A stretch of DNA of 64,000 nt from Hypanus sabinus. Its lineage: Eukaryota. Below are positions 2,076-26,984 of this stretch, piece after piece (position 1 is the first letter of the stretch; each line of letters starts with the position of its first letter). Where the stretch lies: assembly GCF_030144855.1 (NCBI RefSeq), contig NC_082709.1, positions 80,538,001 through 80,602,000 on the forward strand, written 5' to 3'. Both the position numbers and the translations under genes were made by a program. The notes below the pieces were generated by a model. The model was not told where the DNA came from and ran no database searches. It was given only the letters and a program-made list of their open reading frames with translations.

Positions 2076-3839
2076 TTCTTGCCTGCACTACCTTGGAGGT
2101 CCTTCTCCTCAGCCTCTTTCCTAACTCTATATACTCACTGTACAGGACTTTGTTTTTGTAAATTACGTTTGCTAACTTCTGTTAGTAATGTTTATAATAT
2201 GCTGTGCTGTTCTTGCAAACAAAAAGCTAATTTTCATGGCATTTATAACCTGGGCACTGATGCTTCTGACAATAAACTTAAATTTAGAATTTATGATCCT
2301 CGTTTCTAAAAGCACGTCAGTTCTCAATCCCAGTCCCATTCTGACCTAACTGCAGCCTCCTCCACTGCCACAGTGAGCCCGATATTAGCAAGAAGAGCCG
2401 TACGTTACCCTCCCTGACAGTGCTACTGCATGTGGCTTCTGCTTTTACAAAATGGGCCTGTGTTACACGTTAACTTCGGATTCAACACTTCCTCATTCGA
2501 AGGGAGAATATGAGGATGAAAACCAAGAACGTAAATCCAAGTATCATACAGGGAAGATAAAAATCAAGTCAAATCACTGTGAAGTGTACTCATATGCTGA
2601 GTGTGACATTGCAGGGGATAGAATAAAGCGGGGGATGTACCTTTAATAAGATGTGAGAAGACGAAATGTTATATTCTGTGAGGAGGATCAGCGTGCACAA
2701 AATTTGTATTCCAAAAATGTGAAATATTCAGAATAATTAACATGTAGAAACATCTTCAATGATTTTTTTTATTAAATGTAGAAATATATTATCCATTGCA
2801 ATTCTCACAATAATAATAAATTAAAAGTTTTGAGATACATGTACATACTTTTAAAAATGATCAGAATAAATACAGTATAAATAAATTAAGTTAAATATAT
2901 CTTCTAACCATTGGAAGAACAATCACATTATGCTCACTGAAGGTCAGTGATGAAATCAAGAGGAATGGTTTTGCAAACCACAACCTGTGCACTAAGTGTA
3001 GGTCAGAACATTCCCAATGCATATTCCCATTGCAAAAATGACAATTAGAGGAATAATTTTTGGGAAAACGAACGGAACTTTAAACAATTTTCCTTTGAAA
3101 AGGGGCTGAAACCTACAACTCTCAGATTAAACTGATAACACTAGAGGATGCTGGACAGAAGAAATTGCAAAATTTCATGTGCATGAACTTATGAGAAAGA
3201 AAATTCCACCCAGGATTAATTTTAGGTAGGGAACTAAAATGATGTAAACCATAACAGAGATAAGATGCAGAATGGCAGATAGAGTACGAAGCTGTCCACT
3301 GTGCACCTTTTCCAGGAATGGATCATTGCATTACAGTAGCTGCCTGTCTTGATATGAATGGACAAGAATAGGATCATTCAGCAAATTCACATGTCATCAC
3401 TGAGTAATACTACAAAAATAAATTAATTAATTAATTAATTATACAATAAATTAATACAACACTGGATATGGAGAAAGACCCGGACATTATTCCTTCCACA
3501 TCACTTGCCAAATGAAAATATGTGATTCATATAGTTATATAATAAATAGTAAAAACAGAAAATACTGCAAACATGCACAGCTCCGACAACTGCTGAGAGG
3601 AGTGAACAACAGTTAGCGTTTCAAGTTTATGAGCATTGACTCGAGGAGTTAACTCAGGTTTCTTCTGCACATGCACTGATTATTTGCACCAGTTGGTGTT
3701 TCCATTAACATTTCTAGCATTTAGTTTAATTTATCTTTGAATGTAATATCAGTCTGTTCAGATATACTTTTCCTTGAAATTTATTTTAAATAAATAGTCA
3801 TAAATCTTGATCCCTCATGAAATTGACTCTGGAAAATCT

Positions 3840-6800
3840 TCAGTGATCTCTGCTGATTTTTGCCATAATGAGAAGGAGCTGTTTCAAATGCGTCATGGTC
3901 TCAGTGCGGGTTATCTCCCAGGCACAGTTGCTGAATCCCTAAAAGGGAGGAAAAAAAGGCAAATGTACTCAATAGTGAAAAATTAGATAATGAACAAGTA
4001 TCAAGTAGATAAATCAGTGTATTGGCAGGCACATGTTTAAATATCAATGTACCTTCTGTTTCAGAAACTCTCTCAATTTCTGAAAGTATTTAAGAATTGC
4101 GGCATTCTTCCTTGGTCTGGTCTCTGAGCCTGGTTTCCGGACACACACATCCAGCTCTCTGAGCTGCCGATCCAACAGAAGCCGAAGGAGTTCCACTGAG
4201 CTCTGGACCCAGCTGACTGAGCTCAGGTTCATACTGTAGATCCTGCGGAGGTGATGCAGGGTCTGATGGACAATCTGGATCCTTTCCTGGGCCTGTGCAA
4301 AACACACATGGGGACATTAGTAGGGCCGTGGTCTCACAAACGTTTAGAATTAGAACAGAGTGTTTATGAGTCTTAGTACAAGACAAAATCAAACATCAAC
4401 TTAAAATATACAGACCGCAAATGGAGGGCAACTAACAACTGTGAATTGAAGGCCACATCATTGGCAGTTTCCGTCTACAGCTAGAGATTTCAACAGGGAA
4501 TGAGCAATGAACCACACGGATGAAGAACAAGACGCTTGACTGAATGAGGGAATGGCATCGATGCCACAGGATGCTACTTACACAGAGACAAGAGTCTGCT
4601 CTCCGTTCACCAGAAATAGCGAGGGGGAGATTTTATAGAAATCGACAATCTCACAAAGAGGGGAATCAAGGAGGCGAAACAGACAGTCGTCCGAATGGGT
4701 TGTTACAAAGATTAAACAGTAATTTATAAAGACAGTGGCATAAACAGTTGCATGTTAACTTTGCAAACACGAGGAAAGCTGCAGATGCTGGAAATTCAAG
4801 CAATACACAAAAAATGCTGGTAGAACACAGCAGGCCAGGCAGCATCTATAGGGAGGAGCACTGTCGACGTTTCGGGCCGAGACCCTTTGTCAGGACCAAC
4901 TGAAAGGAAAGATAGTAAGAGATTTGAAAGTGGGAGGGGGAGGGGGAGATCCGAAATGATAGTAGAAGTCCAGAGGGGGTGGGGTGAAGCTAAGAGCTGG
5001 AAAGGTGATTGGCAAAAGGGATACAGGGCTGGAGAAGGGAAAGGATCATGGGACGGGAGGCCCAGGCAGAAAGAAAGGGGGAGGGGGGGAGCACCAGAGG
5101 GAGATGGTGAACAGGCAAAGAGTGATGGGCAGAGCCAGAAAGAAAGAGGGGGGAATAAATAAATCAAGGATGGTGTAAGAAAGGGAGGAGGGGCATTAAC
5201 GGAAGTTAGAGAAATCAATGTTCATGCCATCAGGTTGGAGGCTACCCAGCTGGTATATAATGTGTTGTTCCTCCAACCTGAGTTTGGCTTCATTTTGACA
5301 ATAGACGAGGTCATGGGTAGATTTATCAGAATGGGAATGGGACATGGAATTAAAATGTGTGGCCACAGGGAGATGCTGCTTACTCTGCACCTACACACCT
5401 ATGCTCTGTCCACCAGAGAAAGCAGGATCTCCCAGTAGCCACACATTTTAGGTGAACTGGTTAGGGGAATCGATGACAGGTGACTATGGGAATGGGAACT
5501 TTTTAGGGGTGTCTTGTAATGTGAGCTGAGGTGTCCTATGTCTGCACCCTGTGGTACCTGATGCCCAATGGCCATCACACATTTTTAAGATAAGCAGATC
5601 ATAGGCATCTTCTACACTTCAGAACTTGAGTAGAGGCAAATAAAAGTCACAGAAAAAAAGGTGCTGGGATCCTCTCAGTCCATACCACCCATCAAGCAGC
5701 CACCTAAAGAAATCTCTTTCAGAGTGATTGGGGCAGTGGTAGTAGAAGCGAGATGCAGCCTGGAGAGAAACTGCGAGGAAGGAGAGGCAGTGGAACAGCA
5801 TAAAGGCAGTCAGTTATATGGTGTGAAATATGTCTATTTTAGTACAAGTAATGTCAGGAACAAGGGTGATGAAGTTAGAGCATAGGTCAGTACATGGAAG
5901 TTCAATGTTGTGGCCATTACAGAGACTTGCCTGTCAGAAGGGCAAGAATTTTCTGTTGCATTTTCTGGGGTTTAGATTTTTCAAAAGGGACAGGGAGAGA
6001 GGGGAAATGGTGGGGGAGTGGGATTGCTAATCTGGGATGGTATCGCAGGGCATCCTTGAGGGATCGTCAACTGAGTCAGTGTTGTTGGAAGTCAGAAACA
6101 GCAAGGGAGCAGTCACTCCATTGAAAGTTTTCTGTCCATCCCCCTACAGTATCAGAGATACTGAGCTGCAGATTGGGAGGCAGATTTTGGAAAGATACAG
6201 GGTTGTGGTCATGGGTGACTTCAAGTTCTCTAATATTGATTGTCAGCTCCTCCGTGCAAAAAGTTTAGATGGGACAGAACACGTTAGGTGTGTCCTGGAA
6301 GGATTCCTGACAGTGTGCAGACAGGCCAACTAGAGGAGAGGTCACATTAAGACTGGTTCTAGCCAATGAACATGGTCAGGTGACATATCTTTTTTAGATG
6401 CGCATTTTGGAGACATTGACTACAACTCCCACAACTTTACCATAGCCTTTTAGAAGGATAGGAGCAAACAGTGTGATAAATTATTTAATTGGAGGCAGGT
6501 GAATTATGATGCTATTAGATAGGAACGAGAGCATAAATTGGGAACAGATGCACTCAGAGAAATGCACAATGGAAATGTGAAGGCTGTAGTACTTGCATGT
6601 GTTTCTGGATAGGTTTACCCTATAAAGGCAAGGAAAGGATGGTAGGGTGAAGGAATCACGGTTCACAAGAGAAGTGGAACACCTAGTTTAGAGGAAGAAA
6701 GAAACATACCTAACATTTAGTAAGACAAGATCAGACTCTTGAGAGTTACAAGGTAGGCTATAACACATAGGAGCATAATTAGACCATTTGGCCCATCTAG

Positions 6801-9475
6801 TGTAGCAGACGGAACATATTCTGTCTTGAAGTCTTCTCGCTTGTGGTGTTTGCAAAATTCTGTCCTGAGACCCTTCTCTTTGTAATATTTTTTAAAATGA
6901 CTTAGGTCAGGAAGCGGAAATGAGAGTTAGTAAATTTGCAGATAACACAAAGTTTGATGGTGTTTAGTAGAATAGAGAATTGATTTGGGTTACAATTGAA
7001 CATTCATGGAATGCAGAGCTGGGCTGGAAAATGGCAGATGGTGTTCAATTTAGAAAAGTATCAAGTTTTTCTCTTTGGAAGGTCAAAATTGAAGGCAGAA
7101 TATACAGAGTTAATGGCAGGGATCTTAAGTGGAGGAAAAGAGGGATCTTGAAGTCCATGTCCATGGATCCCTTAAAGTTGCTGTGGAAGTTGACAGGATG
7201 ATTAAGAAGACATATGGAGTTACTCATAGGATTGAGTGTAAGAGCTGTTAGGTAATGTTGCAGTTCTATGTTCTATGTTTCTATAACTCTTCTATAAAAC
7301 TCTGGTTAGACCACACTTGGAGTATTGTGCTCAGTTTTGTTCACTTCAATATAGGAAGTACATGGCTTTACAGAGGGTGCAGAGGAGACTTACCATGATG
7401 CTGATCAGATTAGAGGACATGTGTCACGAGGATAAATTGGGTTTTTCTCTTTGGAGAGAAGGAAAATGAGAGGTGACTTGATTGAGGTGTACAAGATGAT
7501 AACAGGCAAAGGTAGAGTGGGCAACAGAGACTTTTTCCCAGGATGAAAATGGCTAATACAAGGAGCATAACTTTCAGGCGTTTGGAGGAATGTATGGGCA
7601 GGCAGTGTCAGAGGTAGGTCTTTTACACAGAGAACAGTGGATGCATAGAACGTCTTGCCAGGGTGGTGGTCGAGGCAAATACATTTGGGACATTATTGGG
7701 ACTCTGAGATAGACATATGCAAGAAAGGAACACGGAGGACTATGAGGGAGGGATGGGTTAGAATGATATTAGAATAGACATTGTGCATGTACTGTGCTGC
7801 ATTGTTCTCATGCTCATTCACCATTAGCTGCTCAGTATCTTTGGCAATTGAAGCAATCATATACTCCTTAAATGTTGTGAAAATTTCTGCCCTCAATATC
7901 TTCACAGACACTGGGTTCCAAATTTCAAGCATACCCTGGAGGAACATTTTTCTAATGTCCCATCCAAACCTCTTACTTTTTTGTCTTAAATCAATGTAGA
8001 CACCTCAGCTGTGGGGAAAAATAATGCAATACATTCTAATTCCACCACACATAATTTGATGCACCTCTATTCCCCCCCCCCCCCCCCACACACACACACA
8101 CACACACAGTGCCTTCGTCTCCTTGATCCCAGTGGGCCAATTAAGCTGAACAATCATTTAACCAGGTTGGAGGGGGCACTTAATCTTGGGTGTCAGATTA
8201 TTAGGATGGTGCAGTTGATTTTATCACCCATGGTGGACACCGTTTGTCTGTTGATTCGAGGAGATTTTGAGGGGATAAGAAGATTTACAGCAGATGGTCA
8301 GAAGGGATAAATGCAGTGGGTAGTTGAAACGATCAGACAGCCTGATCAGGGGGCGCAGGGAGAAGGAGTGAGAGTAACAAGCAGAAGGTCGCAGAGAGCG
8401 GCATGTTTAGTGTTAGAGCATGTGAGATGAGGAGAGGGTGTTAGATACACAGTGTGGGCCACCAGTGAGTGGGACACAGGAGGAGATCGACAGGGTGTGA
8501 AGGCTGCAGTCAGATATATTCCCTTTGAATGTTTTCCTTAGGATCCGAGCTGGAGTGACAGAAAATGCCAATGACATGGAGAGAAAGCATTGACATTCTG
8601 TAATAGTTTATTCACCTGTTCAATTTCAAGTCAGATTCTTAGCATCACACAAATATCTCGAATAATTTACGTTAAAGTAAAATGCAGAGATTACTCACAG
8701 GAACCTCCGCCGAAAGTTTCACCAGCTCCAAGGGCTTGGTTTTCAACGACAGCCTCTCAGTCACACAGTGTCGAGGGAGGCGGCCACCCTGAGACAGAAG
8801 ATATCAACGTTACTGACAATCCCCACACACAGAAACACCGGACAACAGACTCTTTGAAATCACCTGATTGGTAACAGCAAACAGTCGGGGACTGTCAGGA
8901 CGTTAGACATTGTGCAACGTGAAACATGAAACGTTTAAGATAATTAAAGGATTTGATAGGATTGAGGCAGGAAATATGTTCCAGATGTTGGGAGAGTCCA
9001 GTACCAGAGGGCATGGATTGAGAATAAGAGGTCAGTTATTTAAAACAGAGTTGAGGAAGAGCTTCTTCTCCCAGAGAGTTGTGGAGGTGTGGAATGCACT
9101 GCCTCGGAAGACGGTGGAGGCCAATTCTCTGGATGCTTTCAAGAAGGAGCTGGATAGATATCTGATGGATATGGGAATCAAGGGATATGGGGACAAGGCA
9201 GGGACTGGGTATTGATAGTGAATGATCAGCCATGATCTCAGAATGGCGGTGCAGACTCGAGGGGCCGAATGGTCTACTTCTGCACCTATTGTCTATTGTC
9301 TATATTGTCTATTGACCGGTCTCTGGGAGCGGGTTCAACTCACCATTTCATTCAGCTCGCCCAGAGTCTCTCTGTTGAGAACTTGCAGTAACTGTAACCT
9401 CTCACAGCCCAGGGTCAGGGTCACGGTCAACAACAGCCACACACTGCAAACTCTCCAAACACGGCCCAATGCCAT
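3840..9475 (-). CDS. Type I interferon precursor, 4 exons (IFN-A), 186 aa
   Basis: Exons 9475-9344 (MALGRVWRVCSVWLLLTVTLTLGCERLQLLQVLNRETLGELNEM), 8788-8699 (GGRLPRHCVTERLSLKTKPLELVKLSAEVP), 4292-4053 (AQERIQIVHQTLHHLRRIYSMNLSSVSW...ELDVCVRK...KYFQKLREFLKQK), 3938-3840 (GFSNCAWEITRTETMTHLKQLLLIMAKISRDH*). All introns GT-AG, phase 0. Hydrophobic signal peptide, 4 mature Cys, YF..L..FL..K..S.CAWE type I IFN signature. Confidence 0.93.
4765..5450 (-). mobile_element. Penelope-like element 3' part, in IFN-A intron 2
   Basis: GIY-YIG C-terminus LPVATHFNS...LEEQHIIYQLGSLQPDGMNIDFSNFR plus a 3' terminus shared with the copies at 17.0 kb and 58.1-58.9 kb. Confidence 0.8.
5820..7790 (+). mobile_element. 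Degenerate CR1-type LINE (endonuclease and RT remnants), IFN-A intron 2
   Basis: VVVMGDF.F.NID and KFADNTK-like remnants, CR1 C-terminal similarity; many frameshifts. Confidence 0.75.
8902..9316 (+). mobile_element. 5'-truncated CR1-type LINE in IFN-A intron 1
   Basis: TRGHGLRIRG...FFSQRVVEVWNALP peptide and (CTATTGT)n tail; absent from the 140-nt paralogous introns of B and C (A intron 1 is 555 nt). Confidence 0.88.
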
Positions 9476-9654
9476 CTTCACCCGACACTGAATAAAGCAC
9501 CGATCTGAGACCAGAATCAGCTCCGAAAACGGGTCTTGTTCGCCGAATGGAACTCTCGATATGGAAATGCCACGGCTTGTGATCCGGGAGCGGACGCCGG
9601 TTCTGCCGAGACCCGTGTCTGGGGATCGTGTTCTGAGCTCTCTCTGCCATGCTG

Positions 9655-9815
9655 CCGGATTTTATATGTGAAAATCCGAAAATAGGTTTCATTCGAAAAG
9701 TGAAATGACCGGGATATTTGGGAGCCTGTCGGGAGAGAGCGGTCTCCGCTCTGAAGTAAGGAATCTTAAAGCGGGAGAGTCCAGCTGCAGCGACGGGAAA
9801 ATCCGCCACCGGGGA
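9655..9815 (-). promoter_or_regulatory. IFN-A proximal promoter (TATA, IRF element, kB-like sites)
   Basis: TATAAAA on the minus strand at 9660-9666; GAAAAGTGAAA 9695-9705; GGGAGAGTCC and GGGAAAATCC at ~9773-9805. Confidence 0.75.
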
Positions 9816-11454
9816 GAGCAACAGCGCTCAGGATATTGGTGCGTTCGTTCAGTTCGGGTTCAAAGGGCAGTGGAGGGTGGGTCAGCTTTAGCAGGGAACG
9901 ACGGACGTGACTGTTTCCGTGCCTCGGTGAGGGTTTCATTTTTATCAGGGTTACATTTACTCTGCCCCTTTCAGCGCTGATCTTTTAACCATAACAATTA
10001 CAGCACGGAAACAGGCCATCTCGGCCCTTCTATTCCTTCGGAGACACAAACAGATTTATGTTGAATTCGCACCTTGGACTCACCCAGTTCCAGTGAAACC
10101 ACATGGCAGGGTGGTCAGTGCAGAAAGCCAAGGCCATAGCGATGGGTACTCCAGTCCGTGACTGTGCCCTCTAGGCAAAGAGCGTCTTTGCAGTTGTTGC
10201 TGTAGTCTGTGTTTAAATAAGACATTTCGATTTCTCCTTTAAATCGAACCGCTGGGACACCGAGTCGGATGGCTCTTCTTTCCCCAGGAAAGACTCCGGC
10301 TCTGTTTGCAACTGCAAGAAAAGCGAAAGTAACCCCAGACAGGAAAAGGGTTTCGTCACTTCCGAAGTTGTACGTGTTTGTAAATGACCGAATAAAACTG
10401 CAGTTTGCAGGTTTTGAAACCGGGGTAATTCTCAACCCCACTCTCATTCGTGCGGCGGGGGACCTCCTCCACTGCCAGAGTGAGGTACAACGTAAACTGG
10501 AAGAACAAAGCTTGCCATCCCTCTCGTTACGATTGCAAGAGGCATCTGCTGTTCAACGGTCGCTTACTAAATGCTGGAGTAACCCAGCAGGACGTCCCTG
10601 GGAAAGAGTGAACTGTCAGGACTGGAGAAGGGGCTCGCCCCGAAATGTTAACTCTTTTCCATAGACGCTGCCTGGCCTGCTGAGTTCCTTCAGCATTTTG
10701 CACGATTTGCTTGGATTTCCAGCACCTGCAGATTTTCTCATCTTCGAGACATCTGCTGAGTACATCTTAGTCTTTGCGGCGTCTTCACTTCGGATTCAAC
10801 TCTTTCTCGTTTCAAAAGAAATATAAAGAAATAAAACCAACAGATTAGATCCGTGTAAGAACATTGGAATATAAAACTGGGACAACTCACAACAAAATGT
10901 AGGCCCTTGGCTTATTCCGGCGAGTGAAAACTACAGCGTTAAGGTACTAAAAGCGAAGTGCTCACAACGCGGAAAATGCAGAAAATCTTTAGAATCTATA
11001 TTCCATGGGGAAGAGGGTTGCATCACTTTCTGAGTCGGAATTGAAGCGTTTAAATAACAAAAAAGAACAGAAATGTATTTTAAAAGAACGCAGACATCAG
11101 AGGCACTCCGTACTTAGCGAGCACCGTCCCGGGGAAGTGTACCCCCGTACAGCGAATCTCCACAGGTTGGCTGTGACCCGGGCTCTCTGCACTGTCCCAC
11201 CCTGCGCTGTGGTGTCAGCGGAGCTGGCTGAGTGCGAGAACGGAATTAATAGGAATTCTCTCTGCGGATCCGAATATCAGCGCTGAAAGACACGGTGCTA
11301 CTCTAACCCTGATAAAATACAGCCTCCACCGAGGCACCGGCACTGTCACTTCCTCATCCCACCCTCGTCCTCTGCCAAGCCTGACCCTCCCTCCGCAACA
11401 CCTTGGAATCCTCAAGCTGACCGCATTAACTCCGGGGCCTGAGCGCTGCTGGAA

Positions 11455-11605
11455 TCGCGGATTTTCCCGTCGCTGCTGCGGGACTCTCCCGCTTTCAGAT
11501 TCCTTACTTCAGAGCGGAGACCGCTCTCTCCCGACAGGCTCCCAAATATCCCGGTCATTTCACTTTTCGAATGTCACCCGTTTTCGGATTTTCACATATA
11601 AAATC
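11455..11605 (+). promoter_or_regulatory. IFN-B proximal promoter
   Basis: GGATTTTCCC 11459-11468; GGGACTCTCC 11480-11489 (fits GGGRNNYYCC); TTTCACTTTTC 11558-11568 (IRF element, reverse); TATAAAA 11597-11603. Confidence 0.75.
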
Positions 11606-11787
11606 CGGCAGCATGGCAGAGAGAGCTCAGAACACGATCCCCAGACACGGGTCTCGGCAGCACCGGCGTCCGCTCCCGGATCACAAGCCGTGGCATTTCC
11701 ATATCGAGAGTTCCATTCGGCGAACAAGACCCGTTTTCGGAGCTGATTCTGGTCTCAGATCGGTGCTTTATTCAGTGTCGGGTGAAG

Positions 11788-14700
11788 ATGGCATTGGGCC
11801 GTGTTTGGAGAGTTTGCAGTGTGTGGCTGTTGTTGACCGTGACCCCGACCCTGGGCTGTGAGAGGTTACAGTTACTGCAAGTTCTCAACAGAGAGACTCT
11901 GGGCGAGCTGAATGAAATGGTGAGTTGAACCCGCTCCCAGAGACCGGTCCTGACAGTCCCCGGCTGTTTGCTGTTACCAATCAGGTGATTTCAAAGAGTC
12001 TGTTGTCCGGTGTTTCTGTGTGTGGGGATTGTCAGTAACGTTGATATCTTCTGTCTCAGGGTGGCCGCCTCCCTCGACACTGTGCGACTGAGAGGCTGTC
12101 GTTGAAAACCAAGCCCTTGGAGCTGGTGAAACTTTCGGCGGAGGTTCCTGTGAGTAATCTCTGCATTTTACTTTAATATTATTTATTCAAAACATTAATG
12201 TAAATATTGTGAAAAATCTGATCTGAACTCTAACCGGAGAATGGGCAACAGCAGAATATTGTTTCATTAGCTCTGTGCGCGTCACCTACTTAGAATCACT
12301 ATCACTGACTCCGAAGAGCCCATGCATACCGAAAAGATCTCACTTTAGTGATCACCCTCCTCTCATCTCTCTCTCTATCCCACTCAGGAGTAGCTCACTC
12401 TCTTGTATCTAATTCTCTTCAGTCATTTCACTTGATCTACTGGGTTTCCACGTCTAAACATATCACTGTCCATGACTCACGCTCCCTCTTTCTTGTTTCA
12501 CTCTCTCGTTATCTCAACCACCCACTGAATTTATATTTTCTGTCTCTATCCCGGAAACCCTCTCATCCCTTCAATCATGCTACCTGTGTCCAGCACAGCT
12601 GACTGCTCTTCTTGATACCTATGCTGCAGTGACAGGTTGTGAGTTTTCCCCTTTCGGAATAGTTACGTTACTCCACATCACTGCTGGTCCATTGAATCAT
12701 GGAGAAGCGGCTGAGGGCAAAAGTGATAGAGGTGTGCAATATTATACGTGGTTCTGTAAATGTAAATATAGGTAGCTGTAAACCTTTCCCCATCGCTTTG
12801 TATATAAAGCCAGCGCTCTAGGTTGAAGGCAGGGATTAACAGGTTTGAATGGAATCCAAGGAAAAAAAAACAATTCCCCTAGTTTGTAGTCAGAATTTGA
12901 AATACAATGCCTATTAGAGTGGCAGGGGCAAAAACTCTCAGAATTTTTGAAGAGTTACTTGGTATTATATAATGTGCCGAGGTAAGTTAAGCTAGTGACC
13001 AAGTTACTACTTGATGGTGCCATGGACGGAGAATGTTGAAGATTGTGTAGATGTAAAGCTGGCTTTATGACTTGCCTCCATTCAAGTTTTGAATGAGGGC
13101 CTTTGCGGGTTAATTGTCATATAGTGCACCCTTGTCAAAGGGCAGCTCTCCCCTTTATATCTCTCCCTTCCCTTAACCTAGCATCTACATTTTCTGTTGT
13201 AGCCTTGTTCTCTCTTTCGTTATGTAGCCTTGTGCCGACTTATTATGCATACTACCGTTTATACTGCTGTCTGAATATATTACGGTTCAAGCTTTTTACA
13301 CGACCCATGTTTCATCAACATTCTTTTCCTCTTCATTTGATTGCACATCTATTGAACATTTATCTTTCCCTCACCATCTCTGTCTTGAGGAGATCTGACC
13401 AAAATTCCCTGCGCTGACTGAATGGCCTTGTATCTTTGACGCTATTCTTGCAGATCAGTTCCACACTCCGTCAATGATTTTGACATTCTGTCGTACATCT
13501 GAGGTTTTACCAATAATAAGTTGACCATTCTTTGTTTAACCTGCAAACTGTGGACTGCAATTCATATAGCCATAAGTCATAGGAACATAACTAGGCCATT
13601 CAGCCCATCTAGTCTGCATCATGATTGACCCCGAATCTCACTCAACCCCATATACCTGCCTTCTCGCCATATCCTTTGATGCCCTGACCAAGCAGGAAAC
13701 TACCAATTTCTGCTTTAAATATACCCACGGACTTGGCCTCCTCCACAGTCTCTGGCAGAGCATTCCACAGAATCACTACTGTCTGGCTAAAAAATTCCCC
13801 TTACATCTGTTCTAAAAGGTCGCCCCTCAATATTAAGGCTGTACCCTCTAGTTCTGGACACCCCCGCCTTAGGATACATCCTCTCCACATCCATCTTATA
13901 TAATCCTTCCAACATTCAGTAGGTTTTGATAAGATCCCCATGCATTCTTCTAAATTCCAGTGAATACAGGCCCAAAGCTGCCAAACGTTCCTCACATGTT
14001 AACCCCTTCATTCCCAGAATTCTCGTGAACCTTCTCTGGACTCTGTCCAATGACAACCATCCTTTCTAAGATATGGAGCCCCAAACTGTTGACAATACTC
14101 GAAGTACAGCCTGATTCGTGTCTTATAAAGCCTCAACATTATCTCCTTGATTTTATATTCTATTCCCCTTGAAATAAGTGCCAACATTGCATTTGCCTTC
14201 TTAACCTGCAAATTAACCTTCTGGGAGTCTTACACAAGGACACCTAAATCCCTTTGCTCCTTTGATGTTTGAATTTTTTCCCCATTTAGATAATAGTCTG
14301 CACTTTTACAAAGCTGCATCATCATACATTTCCCAACACTGTATTCCATCTGTCACATATTTGCCCATTCTTCCAATCTGTCTAAGTCCTGCTGCAATCA
14401 CGTTGCTTCCTCAGCAGTACCGACCCCTCCACTTATCTTCATATCGTCCGCAAACCTTGCCACAATGCCATCAATTCCATTATCTAAATCATTGACAAAC
14501 AATGTGAAAAGCAGCGGTCCCAATACTGACCCCTAAGGAACACCACTGGCAGCCATCCAGAAAATGCCCCCCTGATTCCCACTCGCTGCTTCCTGCTTGT
14601 CAACCATGCCTGTCTCTTTCCTGTAACACTATTGTATCTTATCTTGTTAGGCAGACTCATGTGTGGCATCTTATTAAATGCCTTCTGAAAAATCCAAGTA

Positions 14701-15508
14701 AATTGCATCCACGGCCACTCCCTTGTCCACCCAGCTGGTTACTTCCTCGAAAAACTTTAACAGATCTGTCAGGCAAAATTTCCCTTTACAGAAGGGAGAC
14801 TTATTTTATCATTAGTTGCCAAGTACCCTGAAGCCTCATCCTTATTAATTTAGTCCAACACGTTCCCAACCACAGAGGTTAGGCTAATTGACCTTTACTT
14901 TCCTTTCTTTTGCCATGCTCAACATCTCTCTGATGGCTTATTGCTTGGGGTTGATGTTAGATAAGCATTCTGTTCTAAATCTCAACTTCACTGGAACCAC
15001 GGTCCTTCTAATGTCCCCACGTGTGTTTTGCACAGGCCCAGGACTGGATCTGGATCATCCATCAGACCCTGCATCACCTTCGCAGGATCTACAGTATGAA
15101 CCTGAGCTCAGACAGACGGGTGGAAGACTTCAAGATTCACTTGGATCGGCAGCTCAAAGCACTGGACGTTTGTGTCCGGAAACCAGGCTCAGAGTCCAGA
15201 TCAAGGAAGAATGCTGCAATTCTTAAATATTTTCACGTACTGAGAGAGTTTCTGAAACAGAAGGTGAGTTGGCCAAGATTATTCTCTGTGATTATGAACA
15301 GGTCCATGCAGCTAATTAATATCTGTTCATTAGCTAATATATTGCTTTATTGCTTTTCCTCTTTTAGCGATTCAGTGACTGTGCCTGGGAAAAAACCCAC
15401 GATGAGACCAGGAGACATTTACAACAACTCCGTTTCGTTATGGCAAAAGTCGGTAAAGTTCACCGAAGACTTTCCAGAGATAATATCAAAGAAGGCGAAG
15501 ATTGGTGA
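11788..15508 (+). CDS. Type I interferon precursor, 4 exons (IFN-B), 196 aa
   Basis: Exons 11788-11919, 12060-12149, 15036-15263 (76 codons), 15368-15508 (RFSDCAWEKTHDETRRHLQQLRFVMAKVGKVHRRLSRDNIKEGEDW*). GT-AG phase-0 introns and open frame; net 12-nt in-frame deletion in exon 3 and read-through of the paralogous stop. Confidence 0.88.
13570..14890 (-). mobile_element. CR1-type LINE fragment, IFN-B intron 2
   Basis: FQKAFNKMPH and KKANAMLALISRGIEYK..LYKT peptides. Confidence 0.8.
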
Positions 15509-17004
15509 CTATTTAATTAAAACATTTTATGTGTAAAAGGATATCCAAATGGACTAATATTACATTTTGGAAGGAAAATAAAACAAATTCCAGGGCTATT
15601 TATGAAAACAGAAGATGATGGAAATACTGAATCTGCGTGCAGAGGAAACCTGAGTTTATGTATCGGACCAAATAAAATACTGTCTTAAATGCTCATCAAT
15701 ATGAGCATTTCTTTACGCTAAAGATAACCGTTATTTGTCAAACATAACATCGAAACGTACTTTGAAACGCGTTGTTTGCATCAGCGAAAAACGCTGGGGG
15801 AGTCCGGAGGTGTCGCCGGCGGCAAAATAGCATTCTCACCACTTACTACTCGTTTGTCTTCGGAACGTATATGGAAGGAAACAGGAGTACTCAGAGAAAA
15901 TCCACACGATCATGGGGCGAACATACAAACTCCTTAGAGAGAGCGGTGGAAACGGAACCCCAATCGCTGGTGCTAAATGCTAAGCCTATGCAACCTTAAC
16001 TATTGTTCACGCCCATTCGCCACTACGTGATATGTAGAATACGGTCAGTAATTTTCTATTCTCCTCTGCCCTTGTGTGTTATGTTGAATGTTAAGGCAAT
16101 TTTCATCTGGTGAGTGATGGAGAATAGAGAATGTCTGGATCTATCTTGATATTTATGCACTGATATATTTATTGATGTATTTATTTGATCTACTGTGATG
16201 AGATTTGAATTTGGTGAATGGCCCTGTTTCTGTTCCCAGTGTAACCGATTGACAGTTACTGCAATGCAAGGTTCCATTTCCGGAGAAGCTGCTCTGCGGG
16301 CAGCATTTCACTCTCACTGCCTTTCTTGAGCTTGTTTCGTTGCGGTTGCCAGTAATTACTTCGGTTCCAGTTATTTTTGAACTAATCCAATATAGTTCTC
16401 ATATAAAATGAACTCCGCAGCAATTCATTTTCCATAGTTTTGCATAAAATAAGAATCATAATTTTTTGAGCTTGCTTTTGTAGTATCACTGAGCTCTGTT
16501 AACTTTGTTTTAAAGCAATAGGGTTCAGTATTACCACAAAAAGAATTTTCTTGCCGTGTGTGCTAGCAGGCTAATGATGCTCGACCTCTTTCCTGATCAT
16601 CAATCATGATTACTTACTTCTGTAGCTGATCAACAGCTAGCTGATCAATTCAACTCGACAATCCTGTTGTCATGTTAATGTGAAGATACTTAAATGCGGG
16701 AACAGAGCCCCAAAACGTTGCTAATTTATTGTCTATTTATTGAGAGATATATAATGAAAACTATTTCTAAAAGTGGTAAAATTTATACTGAAGATGTTGA
16801 TGTAAATAAAAGTATTATTTTGAACACTTTTGTCGTGTGATACATCATTATGCCTGCTATTCCTCCTTACCTAGGATCATTTCAAAATTCAAATTTCAAA
16901 GTAGATTTATGATCAAAGTACATATACAACCCCAAGATTCATTTTCTTGCGGGCATAGACAGTAAATTCAGAAAACATAATAGAACCAGTGAAGGACTCC
17001 GTCT

Positions 17005-18028: not shown

Positions 18029-19089
18029 TGAGAGAGGTTTGCAGTCCCCCATCCGGCCCGATGTGGCGGATTTGGGAAAGTTCTGCGGATATGCAGGGCA
18101 AATGAAAAATAAAATACCACCTGCGGACCAAAGCAGAAACTAATCTAGCTACGTCTGTACCCAGACTGGGCCGTGCTTTGGTCAGCCTCTGCACCCCATG
18201 TTAGGGGCGGCTGAAGCCATAAGTATAAAATGCAGTCCCCTTTCATTTTAGAAAGTAGAGCTATCTACGAAATAGAGTGATACGGCCACTGACTGGGGAT
18301 CGTCAGGGCATGCCTGGAGCATGATAGTGCGCAAACCGCTAACGATGCACGGCTGAATAGGTGGGTAGGCACCGGGACATCCGAAAAAGATACTGGCAGC
18401 ATTCAAAGTAGCCCAGGAAAACCCCAGGCTGAGACTGTTGCGAATGTTTCTCAGGGGAGCTGTCCACTTACAACTGAGACCAGTCAGGCAGTTAAGAAAG
18501 ACACGGATGAAATAGTCATTAGAAGTAAACACATTCAGAATGCGTGTATATGACCGAGTTTGCCACGCTGTATGGGTCCTAATGCCCTTCCCTTGGACAA
18601 CATCGGTGGCGTGGAGAGGGGAGACTTGCAACTTGAGCAACTGCCTTTAAAAAACACCTTGCCCAGGCTTGTGCCCTGGAAACTTTCCAAGGCGCAAATC
18701 CATGGTCTATCGAGACTAACGGAGGCCTGCATACTACATATTACCGAGTAATGGAACTTGAAACTGAAATGACAGCATGCAGGGACAGATTTCATCAACA
18801 GTTATAGCGCAATAACCCTTCTTGCGGGTAAATGCACAACGAATAGTAGATCAACGTAGAGCGATAGTAAAAAAAAAATGACTTCATCCCAATCGATACG
18901 TTAAACCAAATAGAACATGAAGTTACCGAAGAGCTGGAAAGAAACCAACCTAAAGTTCTGACGAAGGGTCTCGGCCCGAATAATCGACTGTTTACTCGTT
19001 TCCATAAATGCTGCTTAGCCTAATGAGTTCCTCCAGCATTTGGTCTGTGTTGCAACCGAAAGACCAAAATAATGAAAATGCAAAGCACC

Positions 19090-20245
19090 TGTGACTCTTG
19101 CTCCGGCTAGCGACTTAATATAGGGGATGGTCCGAAACCAATCTGCAAAATTTGCAAAGAAAAATAAGAATTGAAATGTTAAATTTCAGAAAACTCTGTG
19201 TACACTCAAATGCTTAGAACAGAATGAGGAAGAGGAGTTACAAGCATTTAAAAATTACACAACAGTCAGATAAAATTTCTAAGGATATATTTTCATCAAC
19301 GAAAACACGATTGAACACTCCAGGCGAGCGTGTGCAATTCTGGTAAGGAGTACCCACCACTAAACTTAAACGAAAGCACAACCCAGGAAAAATGAAGTAA
19401 CTATCACTATTGAAGAAAACGTTAACCAAAGGAAGAGTATGACCCGGATGGAAGACCTTCCCTCGATCTGAGCATACAGGATGTTGACAAGGAAGTGTCG
19501 TAGGAGATACCTCTTCCCAGAAACAGAAGGGTACCATGTGATAATACAGGACCAGGTGGTTAACACTAAAAATAATCGAAAATACGTAATAAAAGTCTAA
19601 CAAAAGACCCAACAAACTCAAGGCGATATATCAGAAAATGCCAGTAGAAACCAGAAATAATCCAAGACATTACAAGATCCTGCAACAGTTTAACTCAATC
19701 TGATGATTTACACAGGCACAATCAGGAGGGAAATATCATTCCATCAAAATCTTGCTTTAAAATACGAACTTATAAAAAGAAACCATGCCTTAATATAAAT
19801 ACGAGCCAGATCCAGCTTTAGAGTCAGAGTCCCATAAATTATATTCCACTGAACGGTTATTGCAGATAGAATTATCCATAATAAGCGTCCAGATATAATA
19901 ATCTGCAAGAACAACTCACTTAATAGATGCAGTCATTCTAAGCACTCATAACATACAGAGATCAGTAAGTGAAAAGTGAATTAAAAGAGGAAATTGGGAG
20001 ACTTTGGAATATGAACAGATTGGACATCGTCCTGATAGTAATATCTACAACTGGCATCATCCCAAAATTACTATGGCCTACACAGTGATAGTTATGTAAG
20101 TCTCCAAAAGCCACATACTAAGCACCTCTAGAACAGTACGAAAGTTACTAGCAATTGAGAAATGAGTGTGTTTACCTATGCCCATAGCTTGAGTTTTACC
20201 AGCCTAAGCTGAGAAGAAAAGCTTAAAAATGAATAATAATAATAA
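19090..20245 (+). mobile_element. R4/Dong-like (RLE-type) non-LTR retrotransposon remnant
   Basis: Degenerate translation shows LHRHNQ..NII.QNLALKY, IHNKRPDII, LIDAVI motifs of the restriction-like endonuclease region; ends in (AAT)n. Confidence 0.6.
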
Positions 20246-22319
20246 CTTTACCCGAATAGCCTCTACAAATAGTGGCCATGGATTCAGAGCATAGGTCTGA
20301 AGTGCACCAGAACTTGAGGTTTTTCAAATACTCATACGGTGGCGGGGCCGGGTTACAATTTTTTTTACATTCGAATTATACAAAGACCACTGACTCCTCC
20401 AGGCCATAGACATTTAGGTAAGAGGTGGTGTTTTGAAAGGAGATATGTGGAAACAATGTAAACCCAGAACTTCCTACCCAGCCTCAGAAATGACCCAGAT
20501 CCGCCCCAGTTTATTTAATGCCTCAACGGGCCAACATCAGGTGTGGTCACTCTACTGTGGACCATCGGCACAACATGGACACATACTCCAGGCTGCCGTT
20601 TATCAATTAAAACTTGGGATTTCAACACAAAAACCCCGCCATGGCATGGACGGCCCCAAGCCCAACTGTGAAAGGACGGGTTTGAGGCATGAGGCAGCAA
20701 CTCTATCCCTCAAAAACCCAGTGCTACAGAAACGCCAACAGAAGCTCTAAAGGCCTCATCTGTGGGAGAGGATGGGCTACACTCGGAGACAACGTGAATG
20801 GCTGACTCGGAACAGAGGACTCTGGCGAGCTACTGTCGGTGGCCTATTCCCTCGTAGGAATGATGGGGTTAAGCATAATCTATATCATCCCATCGAAACT
20901 CATCATCAGACTTGAGGACATGGGCCTTCCTGGTCCGTAACTGCCTCCGGAATTAAATACTCGCCTTCTTCATTGTAAACTTCAATCAGTGAGGATTAGC
21001 AATAGCATCTCTCTTCGCCGATCATCAACGCAGTTACACTCGCAGGCTGCTCTATTGTCTATACACATTCACTGTGTGGCTAAGCACAGCTTCAACACTA
21101 ACTTCACATGCACCGACAACGTCACTGTTGCTGGATGAATAACAGATAGAGCTGAGTCAACTTACTGGAGAAAGTTCATCGCCCGTTTGAGTGGTATCTC
21201 AAGATCAACCATTCGCTCAACGTCAGCAAATATAAAGAGCTGTTTATTGCCTTCAGCAAGATTGAGGAGGGCAAACCTATACCACTGTACATTGGGGGAT
21301 CTACAGTGAAATTTCGTGGACGTTAACATATCGGATAACTTGCCATAGCCCAACACACGTAAAACCGGAATTTTACCGGCGTCTCTAGAGACGCGGCTCG
21401 TTAGCCCCTCGCTAACAGCCGCTGGACGCAGCGGTGAGAAAACCACTTTTCTCGAACTCCGTATGTCTAGGGTCAATATGACTTGGGTCCCAGCAAAATC
21501 GGGAGGTTGCGATATGTCGACATCCGAACCCCGATCTGTGCGAATACTGGGTAAATACCGCTCCTGTGCAATTTGCCGTGGGCAAGAAACAACAGATGGG
21601 ACATTGCATACAGTGATAAAGAAATTACATTTACAAATTGAAGCTTTATCGAACGGTTAGTAGGGGAAAGAGAAAAGGAAAAATAAAAAGGATCCATTGC
21701 ATTTAACACATTCCAAATGCGCGCAGAAGTTGGAGCTCATCTTGAAGTTGTCTTTAACTCGCGGTCAGAATGAAAGCACGCACCACGCAAATGTGGCTCG
21801 AATTCCATCTCGAACAAACGGGGTCCCCCACGGGTCCATTCTCCTTTCATCTGCACAAAGTACCTTGTGCCAGCGGCATCCGTAGCCTGGTTGGCTGACG
21901 GAACGTTCCTGGGTTGAACAACGTCTCCTCTTCTTTACCTCATACGCAAACATGCCGAAAGCAGAACAGATTGCTCTTACAGAACAGCTAACATGAAATA
22001 CCTACAACAGAGCAGCAGCAATCTTCATCAGGGCTTTACATGTCGACGTAACCGCAAGGAAGGCACGCTAGCATCTTCATTTTCTTACCAGTTTAAGAAG
22101 GTTCGGCTTGTCACCGAACAGTCTAACAGACGTGTGCGCATGTGCTGTTGAAAGCTTTCCGCTTCTTGCACCATAATGTGGTTCGGCAGAATTCGGGCGT
22201 GCAGGAGTGTAAGAATCTGTCGGGAGCAGTACCAATGCACCACGGGCACCTTCCTCCACCGCCACCACCATCGAAAATATCTACCTGAGGCATTGGTTCA
22301 AGAAGGCAGCATCAATCGT

Positions 22320-23130
22320 TAATGCTGATAAGTGTGAGGTGCTACCCTTTGGTAGGACTAATCAAAATAGGGCATACATGGTAAATGGTAGGGCATTGAG
22401 GAATGCAGTAGAACACAGTGATCTAGGAATAATGGTGCATAGTTCCCTGAAGGTGGAATCTCATGTGGATAGGGTGGTGAAGAAAACTTTTGTTATGCTG
22501 GCCTTTATAAATCAGAGCATTGAGTATAGGAGTTGGGATGTAATGTTAAAATTGTACAAGGCATTGGTAAGGCTGAATTTGGAGTATTGTGTACAGTTCT
22601 GGTCACCGAATTATAGGAAAGATGTCAACAAAATAGAGAGAGTACAGAGAAGATTTACTAAAATGTTACCTGGGTATCAGCACCGAAGTTACAGGGAAAG
22701 GTGGAACAAGTTAGGTCTTTATTCTTTAGAGCGTAGAAGGCCAAGGTGGGGGGGGGGGACTCGATAGAGGCATTCAAAATTATGAGGGATTATGAGTGTT
22801 GACGTGGATAGGCTTTTTCCATTAGTGGGAGAGATTCAAACAAGAGGACATGAGTTGAGAGTTAAGGGGCAAAAGTTTAGGGGTAGCACGAGGGGGAACT
22901 TCTTTACTCAGAGAGTGGTAGCTGTGTGGAACGAGCTTCCAGTAGAAGTGGTGGAGGCAGGTTCGATTTTGTCATTTGAAAAAAAAAATGGATAGGTATA
23001 TGGACAGGAAAGGAATGGAGGGTTATGGGCTGAGTGCAGGCAGGTGGGACTAGATGAGAGTAAGGGTTCAGCACGGACTAGAAGGGCCGAGATGGCCTGT
23101 TTCCATGCTGTAATTGTTATATGGTTATAA
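22320..23130 (+). mobile_element. CR1-type LINE 3' fragment (young)
   Basis: ORFs 22339-22767 and 22792-22995: LYKALVR.NLEYCVQFWSP.YRKD..KIERVQRRFTKM. Confidence 0.88.
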
Positions 23131-24344: not shown

Positions 24345-24495
24345 GCGGATTTTCCCGTCGCTGCAGCTGGACTCTCCCGCTTTCGGATTCCTTACTTCAG
24401 AGCGGAGAGCGCTCTCTCCCGACAGGCTCCCAAATATTCCGGTCATTTCACTTTTCGAATGTCACCTATTTTCGGATTTTAACATATAAAATCCG
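24345..24495 (+). promoter_or_regulatory. IFN-C proximal promoter
   Basis: Same architecture as A/B: kB-like sites, TTTCACTTTTC 24446-24456, TATAAAA from 24485. Confidence 0.75.
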
Positions 24496-24675
24496 GCAGC
24501 ATGGCAGAGAGAGCTCAGAACACGATCCCCAGACACGGGTCTCGGCAGCACCAGCGTTCGCTCCCGGATCACAAGCCGTGGCATTTCCATATCGAGAGTT
24601 CCATTCGGCGAACAAGACCCGTTTTCGGAGCTGATTCTGGTCTCAGATCGGTGCTTTATTCAGTGTCGGGTGAAG

Positions 24676-26984
24676 ATGGCATTGGGCCGTGCTTGGAGAG
24701 TTTGCAGTGTGTGGCTGTTGTTGACCGTGACCCTGACCCTGGGCTGTGAGAGGTTACAGTTACTGCAAGTTCTCAACAGAGAGACTCTGGTCAAACTGAA
24801 TGAAATGGTGAGTTGAACCCGCTCCCAGAGACCGGTCCTGACAGTCCCCGGCTGTTTGCTGTTACCAATCAGGTGATTTCAAAGAGTCTGTTGTCCGGTG
24901 TTTCTGTGTGTGGGGATTGTCAGTAACGTTGATATCTTCTGTCTCAGGGTGGCCGCCTCCCTCGACACTGTGTGACTGAGAGGCTGTCGTTGAAAACCAA
25001 GCCCTTGGAGCTGGTGAAACTTTCGGCGGAGGTTCCTGTGAGTAATCCCTGCATTTTATTTCTATGTTAATCATTCGAGATATTCTTGCAGAGTAATGTT
25101 GAGAATCGTATCTGAACTTTATACAGAGAACAAAACGATGATAGAATGTCGACATTTTCTCTCCAAGTCGCTCTCTTCCTCTGTCGTTGTCGCTGATTCT
25201 AAGGAAACCATTCACAATTAATATATCTCACTTCTGTCATCACACGTCTTGGGTTCTCTATGGTGACCCGTAAAGCGCTGGGTTTCTTGGTTTTTCGAGC
25301 ACCGGTACTTACTCATTGTAACTTTACCCAGGGTCGTTAAACACGTGTGCTTTCTGTTTAATCTTGTCAAATTAATTGTGACTGTCACGGGTTTCCCTCA
25401 TTCTAAAATACTTTAAAGAGGACATTTAGCGCCGATCCCAGGGCTCTGTTGGTACTCCTCTGTATCACTGGTGCCTGGCCTCCACGTGGGAGTCCGCCAT
25501 TCTTCTGCACCTGGGTTCAGTCAGCGTCAGCGCTCACCGTGACAACTTCATTCACGTTTCCTCTCGCCCATTCACTGGTAGTTCACTCTCTGTACCTAAC
25601 ACCCACTGGCTTGCTCTACTCCCACTGAACTTGCCAATATCTATGAACTTGTATTTTCTACTCTCACGACCTCTTGTTACCTCAACTCCCCATTGAATTT
25701 ATCTCCTCTGTTAATCTGGAAATCCATTCATCCGTCTATCGTTACACAAAATGGGTTCACTCTAGGTGATTTCACCATCTACTCCGGTCTAACGATTTGA
25801 CACCTCATTGTAATATTTTTCACAGGCCCAGGAAAGGATCCAGATTGTCCATCAGACCCTGCATCACCTCCGCAGGATCTACCGTATGAACCTGAGCTCA
25901 GTCAGCTGGGTCCAGAGCTCAGTGGAACACTTCCGGCTTCTGTTGGATCGGCAGCTCAAAGAGCTGGATGTCTGTGTCCGGAAACCAGGCTCAGGATCCA
26001 GACCAAGGAAGAATGCCACAATTCTTAAATACTTCCGGAAGTTGAGAAAGTTTCTGAAAAGGAAGGTGAGTTGATATGAAAACGTGTAATTGCCAACACA
26101 TTTCTTCAGTCCTTTTATAACCACATAACCAAACAATTACAACATGGAAACAGGCCACCTCAGCCCTTCTAGTCCATGCCAAACGCTTACTCTCACCTAG
26201 TCCCACTGACTTGCACTCAGCCCATAACCCTCCATTCCTTTCCTGTCCATATACCTATACAATTGTTTTAAATGACAATATCGAACCTGCCTCTACCACC
26301 TCTACTGGAAGCTCGTTCCACACAGCTACCACTCTCTGAGTAAAGAAATTTCCCCTCGTGTTACCCTTAAACTTTTGCCCCCTAACTCTCAACTCATGTC
26401 CTCTTGTTTGAATCTCCCCTTCTCTCAATGGAAAAAGCCTATCCACATCAACTCTAACTACCCTCTCATAATTTTAAATACCTCTATCAAGTCCCCCCAC
26501 AACCTTCTCCGCTCCAAAGAATAAAGACCTAACTTGTTCAATCTTTCTCTGTAACTTAGGTGCTGAAACCCAGGTAACATTCTAGTAAATCTCCTCTGAT
26601 TTTGTTGACATCTTTCCTATAATTCAGTGACCAGAACTGTGCACAATACTCCAAATTTGGCCTCGCCAATGCCTTGTCCAATTTTAACATTACATCCCAA
26701 CTCCTATACTCAATGCTCTGATTTATAGCTAGCATACCAAAAGCTTTCTTCACCACCCTATCCACATGAGATTCCACCTTCAGAGAACTATGCACCATTA
26801 TTCCTAGATCACTCTGTTCTACTGACCACATATTTTATATGTTTTCATTATCTAATGCATTGATCTGTCATTTTCACTTCTTCAGGGATTCAGTGAATGT
26901 GCCTGGGAGATAACCCGCGTTGAGACCAGGGCACATTTACAACAACTCTTCCTCATTATGGCAAAAATTAGCAAAAATATGTGA
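24676..26984 (+). CDS. Type I interferon precursor, 4 exons (IFN-C), 186 aa
   Basis: Exons 24676-24807, 24948-25037, 25826-26065, 26886-26984 (GFSECAWEITRVETRAHLQQLFLIMAKISKNM*). GT-AG phase-0 introns, signal peptide, 4 mature Cys, CAWE motif. Confidence 0.93.
25235..25544. mobile_element. Solo LTR-like insertion in IFN-C intron 2
   Basis: TGTCA...TGACA termini flanked by the 5-bp direct repeat ACTTC (25230-25234, 25545-25549). Confidence 0.7.
26115..26825 (-). mobile_element. CR1-type LINE fragment in IFN-C intron 3
   Basis: Same family as 22320-23130; enlarges intron 3 to 820 nt versus ~95-115 nt in the paralogs. Confidence 0.88.

Follow-up and report, generated by a model that had tools for sequence, protein, structure and literature searches.

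A homogenised 5′ block in the type I interferon genes of rays, very probably the product of repeated gene conversion

The human genes HBG1 and HBG2, two tandem genes in one species, carry a conversion tract that runs from the promoter into intron 2 and has its boundary, reportedly, at a simple repeat, the 3′ parts being divergent. Among antiviral paralogues, the closest analogue to the locus described here is IFIT1/IFIT1B of mammals, where recurrent gene conversion is restricted to the 5′ part (Daugherty et al. 2016, eLife; PMC4887208): within species the 5′ parts are 97–98% identical and the 3′ parts ~62–63%, the breakpoint recurs in several lineages, and 5′ trees group by species while 3′ trees recover true orthology (PMC4887208). 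Concerted evolution or conversion is also on record for mammalian IFN-alpha (Gillespie & Carter 1983 and Woelk et al. 2007, as these are cited in PMC6640115 and PMC4887208), and for the type I interferons (IFN1) of vertebrates including cartilaginous fish, Redmond et al. (2019) weighed concerted against birth-and-death evolution on whole genes and argued for the latter (PMC6640115). Here we analyse a 64-kb stretch of vertebrate DNA from the Atlantic stingray, Hypanus sabinus (contig NC_082709.1, positions 80,538,001 to 80,602,000; hereafter the window), which holds a cluster of intron-containing genes annotated by NCBI as type I interferon. Three of these genes, IFN-A, IFN-B and IFN-C, share a nearly identical 5′ block of 720 nt, and comparison with the manta and devil rays (Mobula) indicates that the block has very probably evolved in concert, with interlocus gene conversion acting repeatedly in each of the two lineages. 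We regard it as a new and clear instance of an evolutionary process already known; in our literature search, no paper described gene conversion for the interferon genes of rays or sharks.

The ray block resembles IFIT1/IFIT1B in that antiviral paralogues carry a 5′-restricted tract with a recurrent breakpoint and conflicting 5′ and 3′ trees. The IFIT1 tract, however, is contained in a coding exon and stops at a protein subdomain pivot, whereas the ray tract takes in the promoter, the 5′ untranslated region (UTR) and a whole intron and stops in intron 2. At least four ray genes, lying in both orientations, are involved, and exon 3 appears to hold a second island. The likeness to mammalian IFN-alpha lies in clustered type I interferon paralogues homogenised by conversion, with orthology blurred as a result; but the mammalian IFNA genes are intronless and convert within the coding regions of very similar genes, while the ray genes have three introns, a defined 5′ island and tails whose orthology has lasted tens of millions of years or more. 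As in HBG1/HBG2, the 5′ tract includes the promoter and first exons and ends within intron 2, although no simple repeat or obvious element was seen at the ray block boundary. Features of birth-and-death are present as well, in that the A to D lineages persist, IFN-D is dead in Hypanus and IFN-B appears amplified. Unlike in the whole-gene view of Redmond et al., both processes would act on different segments of the same ray genes, which makes the cluster a clean, segment-resolved case of what the literature treats as alternatives for type I interferons (PMC6640115).

The start-codon region is present in three copies, belonging to IFN-A on the plus strand (ATG at 11788), IFN-B on the minus strand (ATG at 9475) and IFN-C on the plus strand (ATG at 24676). 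Alignment of the three 5′ regions with MAFFT delimits a block that begins ~330 nt 5′ of the ATG and ends 27 nt past the exon 2 donor. In IFN-A it covers 11457–12176 (+) and comprises the proximal promoter, the 5′UTR, exon 1, intron 1, exon 2 and positions +1 to +27 of intron 2; in IFN-C it covers 24345–25064 (+), and in IFN-B 9806–8672 (−), where it is broken by a 415-nt insertion in intron 1 (9316–8902). This fits a preliminary description of the window, which had placed a near-identical 5′ module at 11435–12177. Over the whole block, A and B differ at 11 positions, A and C at 20 and B and C at 19. The coding exons 1 and 2 (222 nt) hold, in the same order, 2, 6 and 4 of these differences, intron 1 (140 nt) holds 1, 0 and 1, and the 5′UTR (~163 nt) 1, 2 and 3. 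The near-identity of intron 1 and the 5′UTR had thus been described correctly, as had the ~2 nt separating A from B in the exons, but the ~4 nt ascribed there to A and C is the B–C figure. In intron 2, A and B are the same up to +27 and C departs from +11. Just outside the block the differences rise to 18–32% upstream of 11457 and to 33–56% in intron 2 past +27, in line with the collapse of identity that had been reported ~20–27 nt past the exon 2 donor; in the flanks, the Hypanus paralogues differ by 23–29% upstream and by 38–52% in intron 2 beyond +27. A two-breakpoint maximum-chi-square analysis of ~2000 alignable sites put the limits at 11457–12176 for A–B, 11459–12168 for A–C and 11417–12166 for B–C. 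The observed value was reached in 0 of 1000 permutations, and the longest identical runs were 177–196 nt, against a maximum of 51–82 nt in permutations.

Homogenisation covers silent and non-coding sites and its breakpoints are statistically sharp, which is the pattern of concerted evolution. Synonymous divergence (dS, Nei–Gojobori, on pooled per-exon codon alignments), whose uniformity along the genes had been named beforehand as an argument against conversion, is 0–0.018 in exons 1 and 2 and 0.18–0.32 in exons 3 and 4 (Fisher tests on synonymous sites, p = 2e-5, 9e-5 and 6e-3), and intron 1 has 0–1 differences in 140 nt vs 37–43 per 100 nt in intron 3 (Fisher p 2e-18 to 2e-15). These contrasts bear on whether purifying selection alone, acting on a constrained promoter, signal peptide and N-terminal module with no exchange between copies, could have kept the block alike. 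The block does hold promoter motifs and coding sequence, and some promoter positions are identical in 7/7 of the ray copies compared; yet intron 1, the 5′UTR and synonymous sites are homogenised as much as the coding sites.

For the comparison between the two genera, Mobula loci were taken from M. birostris (L001, with B on the minus and A on the plus strand, head-to-head; L002, with D and a further copy, MbX) and M. hypostoma (L003, with C). The Mobula B gene is that of L001, P0006 (a Mobula B isoform) having no gene-product record. The Mobula C-termini pair one to one with the Hypanus A, B, C and D types, and the N-termini have Mobula-specific residues. In the flanks, orthologues diverge between the genera by 12–13% upstream and by 8–11% in intron 2 beyond +27, where the Hypanus and Mobula A copies (HsA and MbA) differ at 33 of 304 positions vs 121–155 per ~290 among paralogues. 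Within the block, by contrast, distances are 1.5–2.8% in Hypanus, 3.7–5.4% in Mobula and 8.3–10.3% across genera for any pairing (59–73 differences across genera vs 11–20 within Hypanus), and ~40 or more fixed differences separate every Hypanus copy from every Mobula copy. IQ-TREE analyses follow the same division: the upstream and intron 2 flanks recover the orthologue groups HsA–MbA, HsB–MbB (bootstrap 100) and HsC–MhC (bootstrap 100), whereas the block separates all Hypanus from all Mobula copies with bootstrap 100. In a 60-nt scan, 11460–12119 was concerted in both genera and the rest of the 5′ alignment was orthologous. The switch of tree by segment, the contrast at silent sites and the breakpoints are direct observations. 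The proposal of repeated gene conversion of the 5′ module, made from the Hypanus sequence alone, is strongly supported by the dS contrast, by intron 1 as against intron 3, and by segment trees that flip, with flanks and tail grouping by orthologue with Mobula and the block by genus.

This flip contradicts purifying selection alone. Between genera the block has diverged by 8–10%, compared with 8–13% in neutral flanks, and synonymous divergence in exon 1 (0.10–0.13) matches that of the flanks; because exon 1 dS across genera equals neutral flank divergence, the identity of paralogues within the block is not due to constraint. Nor can constraint yield substitutions that are specific to a genus and common to all its paralogues, and we give this explanation next to no credence. 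An assembly or polishing artefact, in which paralogue reads were mixed in consensus calling and real 5′ differences erased, would find a suitable setting here, in that the 24-member cluster of P0010 indicates a B-like tandem array beside the window, a context prone to polishing errors. However, the copies are non-identical, with their 11–20 differences and an insertion private to B; cross-mapping requires near-identity beforehand and cannot bring 25–50% divergence down to 2%; two independent Mobula assemblies have the same block with the same 3′ limit; and the ~40 or more genus-specific fixed differences common to all copies lie beyond the reach of polishing. The artefact is accordingly an extremely improbable source of the block.

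A further explanation invokes recent duplications or unequal crossing-over within each lineage, which would have produced chimeras of young 5′ and old 3′ halves with no conversion. Unequal crossing-over is certainly active in the cluster: the upstream region of IFN-B and the next such region, at the window start, are spaced by ~9.9 kb, Mobula MbX looks chimeric, and in the skate Amblyraja radiata (L004) the tandem units at 9099–13400 and 18056–22361 are whole-unit duplicates, 98.4% identical over 4.3 kb with introns included. Nonetheless, the upstream flank and intron 2 are orthologous across genera for A, B and C, and gene order and the head-to-head spacing of IFN-B and IFN-A are conserved (ATG to ATG, 2313 nt in Hypanus vs 2316 nt in Mobula). 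Replacement of an internal segment with flanks and gene order undisturbed calls for conversion or for two exchanges of equivalent effect, which one crossover could not provide, and we therefore regard chimeric duplication as very unlikely to account for the block. The segment would have been replaced repeatedly after the lineages split, with both flanks left intact, which argues for interlocus gene conversion. Skate was considered as a further check and set aside, as whole-unit duplicates cannot reveal segment-restricted conversion; L004 also holds a third, older partial interferon copy at 2466–6397.

The 3′ limit of the block is reused in independent lineages: in Hypanus and Mobula alike, sequence that follows the genus gives way to sequence that follows the orthologue at a point between +16 and +27 of intron 2. 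The 5′ limit differs by ~35–45 nt, the shared sequence of Mobula beginning that much further upstream than that of Hypanus and being A-like there. Homogenising the sampled copies takes at least two conversions in Hypanus and at least three in Mobula. Mobula B and D have in common a 13-nt deletion in intron 1 that A lacks, and Hypanus B and C have common derived states at 6 sites, at 3 of which A retains the Mobula state. A fourth Hypanus copy, the pseudogene IFN-D, keeps a remnant of the block at 28016–28438 (+), consisting of promoter and 5′UTR only, with exons 1 and 2 missing; it has lost 10 nt beside the kappaB-like site, and a tandem duplication of 49 nt lies around the presumed start site. 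Its promoter is 5–6% from the Hypanus copies vs 7–10% from those of Mobula. Since the remnant has Hypanus-type states, IFN-D would have joined in the exchange before decaying, and since the Mobula D orthologue is intact (L002 10001–15580, P0004), it would have died in the Hypanus lineage, after 5′ homogenisation. The differing 5′ start, the shared deletion, the derived states and the IFN-D remnant point to several separate events. Scaled to between-genus divergence, the last homogenisations in Hypanus would date to roughly 1/6 to 1/3 of the age of the split, for which the fossil and clock statements quoted in PMC6485097 range from the Late Cretaceous to about 150 million years ago. The IFN-A, B, C and D lineages would themselves predate this split between whiptail stingrays and manta and devil rays.

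In the mechanism that we envisage, the 720-nt segment would have been overwritten again and again between paralogues by interlocus (ectopic) gene conversion, through non-reciprocal break repair templated by a paralogue. The block would thereby evolve in concert within each species, and the distal promoter, most of intron 2 and the sequence from the end of exon 3 onward would evolve independently. Already in the common ancestor, intron 2 past the switch could not be aligned between paralogues, and because this flank is non-homologous between paralogues, tracts would be unable to extend into it; their limits may simply be the end of usable homology, with heteroduplexes unable to extend into diverged flanks. 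Later conversions would then be confined to the same island, whose edges would stay sharp and which would perpetuate itself. With one genome per species, the comparison shows only the outcome of transfer, and non-reciprocity is what we infer from it. The 415-nt insertion in intron 1 of IFN-B is found only in that gene and resembles the dispersed repeats of the window (e.g., 13570–14487); it presumably postdates the last conversion across that point.

Some considerations weigh against this account of the block. The sample covers two genera, the counts within Hypanus are read from one assembled genome, and the C orthologue was taken from a different Mobula species than those of A, B and D. The 11–20 differences between copies appear too few to settle the donor, direction and number of events. 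High GC content, considered as a signature of conversion, was rejected as non-diagnostic, the block being 51–60% GC and the unconverted upstream flank, at 59%, equally GC-rich. Finally, any selection for the homogenisation itself would be conjectural.

Downstream of the block, alignment and trees divide the 3′ module in three. First, intron 2 ends in sequence that is orthologous between genera. In the exon 3 core (15006–15230), the Mobula paralogues are nearly homogenised (distances of 1–3%; 0–5 differences per ~100 nt), and the Hypanus copies form a mosaic, with 1 difference in 78 positions and 9 in 129 between B and C. The tail, which starts ~33 nt (~11 codons) before the end of exon 3 and continues through intron 3, exon 4 and the 3′UTR, is strictly orthologous, its trees grouping A/A, B/B, C/C and D/D, each with bootstrap 100. 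Most of exon 3 appears to have been converted too, strongly in Mobula, as a second, weaker island, and the tail would be the stable paralogue-specific part of these genes. Its divergence looks ancient and conserved between orthologues, as opposed to ongoing diversification. The earlier statement that the later helices diverge was thus too broad: the end of exon 3 and exon 4 are paralogue-specific, but the exon 3 core, corresponding to helices B–D, seems to be converted.

At the protein level, exon 4 differs at 15/32 residues between A and B, 13/32 between A and C and 9/32 between B and C, and exon 3 at 20/76 residues between A and C and 10/80 between B and C. The preliminary description had the A–B value for exon 4 right, but the 9/32 in exon 4 and 10/80 in exon 3 that it gave for A and C are those of B and C; as the A–C differences are larger than noted, the true A–C contrast is stronger than had been claimed. 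The ratio of nonsynonymous to synonymous divergence (omega) in exon 4 between orthologues is 0.41 for the B type and 0.28 for the C type, which indicates purifying selection on both. Positive selection on the 3′ exons was considered and we make no claim of it, omega being 0.4–1.0 between paralogues and 0.3–0.4 between orthologues (B, C); the 14 nonsynonymous vs 0 synonymous changes between A-type exon 4 orthologues are only suggestive (Fisher p = 0.07).

A private patch in exon 3, with DWIWII replacing ERIQIV, is carried by IFN-A (15036–15113) and pseudogene D (32510–32587). Here A and D differ at 3/78 positions vs 8–10/78 to B and C, and both Mobula orthologues lack the patch, which points to conversion between the live IFN-A and the pseudogene in Hypanus. 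The A type is also without the stop codon of B, C and D (TGA to CGA; window 15464–15508, L001 13602–13739), and the resulting C-terminal extension of 13–14 basic and acidic residues is kept between Hypanus and Mobula.

A consensus scan, in which matches to motif only were recorded and seven copies from Hypanus and Mobula compared, placed four promoter motifs inside the block of IFN-A. A kappaB-like decamer, GGATTTTCCC, lies at the block's extreme 5′ edge (11459–11468, +) and is conserved in 7/7 copies; a consensus kappaB-like decamer, GGGACTCTCC, follows at 11480–11489 (+), its first G being T in HsB and HsC. An IRF/PRDI-like core, AAGTGAAA, at 11558–11565 (−) and a TATA box (TATAAA) at 11597–11602 (+), ~190 nt 5′ of the ATG, are each identical in 7/7 copies. 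Such conservation is compatible with the suggestion, part of the original proposal, that conversion keeps the induction logic of the genes constant.

One may go further and suppose that selection actively maintains the converted cassette, for co-induction and for a common signal peptide, helix A and AB loop, with exon 4 setting paralogue-specific receptor behaviour. This would be a sub-case of concerted evolution by conversion, not an alternative to it, and we consider it possible, if on balance unlikely. It is favoured by a 3′ limit that the two genera have had in common from before they diverged, by the conserved kappaB-like, IRF-like and TATA motifs within the island and by the purifying selection on B- and C-type exon 4 (omega 0.28–0.41). 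Yet a homology-limited island persists with no selection at all; the exon 3 core also appears converted, so that the genes do not split simply into constant and variable modules; and MbA exon 2 has drifted, with a 9-nt deletion and 8–9 differences in 81 nt. Any benefit of one common promoter, signal peptide and N-terminal cassette would be conjectural, and a homology-limited island of no selective purpose accounts for the data as well as does the upkeep of induction logic. More doubtful still is the idea that the 5′ island is a long-lived, actively maintained cassette of one virus-responsive promoter, signal peptide, helix A and AB loop, which a recombination hotspot near the promoter, or else selection for co-induction, would have held uniform at least since the stingray–manta split, with exon 4 carrying four ancient, separately conserved identities, A to D. 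If it were true, ray interferons would be naturally modular, with regulation and one receptor face in common and the other face specific to each lineage.

Regardless of selection, concerted exons 1–3 combined with an orthologous exon 3 end and exon 4 make whole-protein trees of ray interferons misleading, as they mix a species signal (exons 1–3) with an orthology signal (exon 3 end and exon 4). The tail alone identifies the four lineages, A to D, that are common to Hypanus and Mobula. The cluster also amounts to a natural experiment, in which nearly the same proximal promoter and N-terminus are joined to different C-terminal helices; since promoter and N-terminus are nearly the same, a difference in activity would be assignable to the tail, and one in expression to the distal flanks.

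Gene models were built from self-comparison of the window and six-frame comparison. IFN-A, IFN-B and IFN-C each have four exons and three introns, every intron being of phase 0 with GT-AG borders, and encode proteins of 196 (A) and 186 (B and C) residues, a size in keeping with secreted type I interferons (~180–200 residues). In IFN-A (+), exon 1 (11788–11919) has 44 codons, encodes the putative signal peptide and the start of the mature protein, and ends in phase 0 at a GT donor; intron 1 (11920–12059, 140 nt) lies within the block; exon 2 (12060–12149) has 30 codons, giving residues 45–74 of P0002. Intron 2 past the block (12177–15005) would be unconverted and is orthologous to intron 2 of Mobula A, with repeat-like sequence at ~13570–14520. 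Exon 3 (15036–15263) has 76 codons and matches Pfam Interferon positions 50–132, and exon 4 (15368–15508) has 46 codons plus stop, including a 14-codon C-terminal extension. IFN-B (−) consists of exons at 9475–9344, 8788–8699, 4292–4053 and 3938–3840, the last two (3840..4292) being of the B type and orthologous to Mobula B. IFN-C (+) consists of exons at 24676–24807, 24948–25037, 25826–26065 and 26886–26984, of which the last two (25826..26984) are of the C type, orthologous to that of M. hypostoma; its intron 3 is long and carries an insertion.

The IFN-A exon model agrees in every residue with the 196-residue RefSeq protein P0002, 'interferon tau-like [Hypanus sabinus]', exon 1 corresponding to residues 1–44. 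For IFN-C, exon 1 is intact in the genome (24676–24807; ATG, 44 codons, GT donor), and the NCBI protein (P0009, partial) opens with a different upstream peptide and no canonical exon 1, so that the annotation probably mis-models this first exon. When exons were searched individually against Pfam, exon 3 alone exceeded the PF00143 gathering cut-off of 26.8 bits in A (29.8), B (41.3), C (40.9) and the distant paralogue IFN-E (45.9), and exon 4 of IFN-A extended the profile at positions 134–154 (15 bits); for P0002 at full length, the precomputed Pfam assignment is likewise PF00143. Full-length relatives were reached via the natural uninterrupted open reading frame at 15012–15533 of the window and scored on its exon 3 part only, P0002 then standing for the complete A protein. 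Cysteines C52, C120 and C155 (P0002 numbering) do not vary among 13 ray sequences, and all sequences that include exon 1 have C24. A hydrophobic stretch was seen at the N-terminus, in the region of the putative signal peptide.

In the Pfam register, exons 1 and 2 lie before position 50 of the profile (signal peptide, helix A and AB loop), exon 3 spans positions 50–132 (helices B–D) and exon 4 positions 134–154 (helix E). An AlphaFold2 model of P0002 from a 13-row alignment was of too low a quality to sharpen this assignment (mean predicted local distance difference test score, pLDDT, 41), and the helices that it places at residues 25–43, 75–94, 101–121, 129–149 and 154–193 are indicative only. 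Intron-containing interferon genes of teleosts and amphibians have five exons and four phase-0 introns (PMC6640115). The ray genes depart from this fish-type structure, with four exons, three introns and an exon 3 of 228–240 nt, and the four-exon structure recurs in Mobula and Amblyraja. It is a structural variant and gives no ground to doubt interferon identity.

The window and the Mobula loci hold further copies. In pseudogene D, exon 3 (32510–32741, +) has an 8-nt deletion that shifts the frame, and exon 4 (32836–32934, +) is of the D type. The distant paralogue IFN-E, at 36–38% nucleotide difference from A–C, has intact exons 3 (63162–63401) and 4 (63505–63603); its exons 1 and 2 were not located. 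An isolated, degenerate exon-4-like fragment lies at 54658–54792. At the window start, positions 1–71 match an interferon upstream region on the minus strand, ~9.9 kb away from the equivalent point of IFN-B (9914–9984), and IFN-B appears to be the last unit of a minus-strand tandem array; Mobula L001 has a single B gene. The exons 1 and 2 of MbX (M. birostris, L002 6076–7000) lie beyond the fetched DNA, and the rest of this copy is chimeric, its intron 2 end being like Hypanus D, its intron 3 like Mobula D, and the end of its exon 4 and its 3′UTR C-like.

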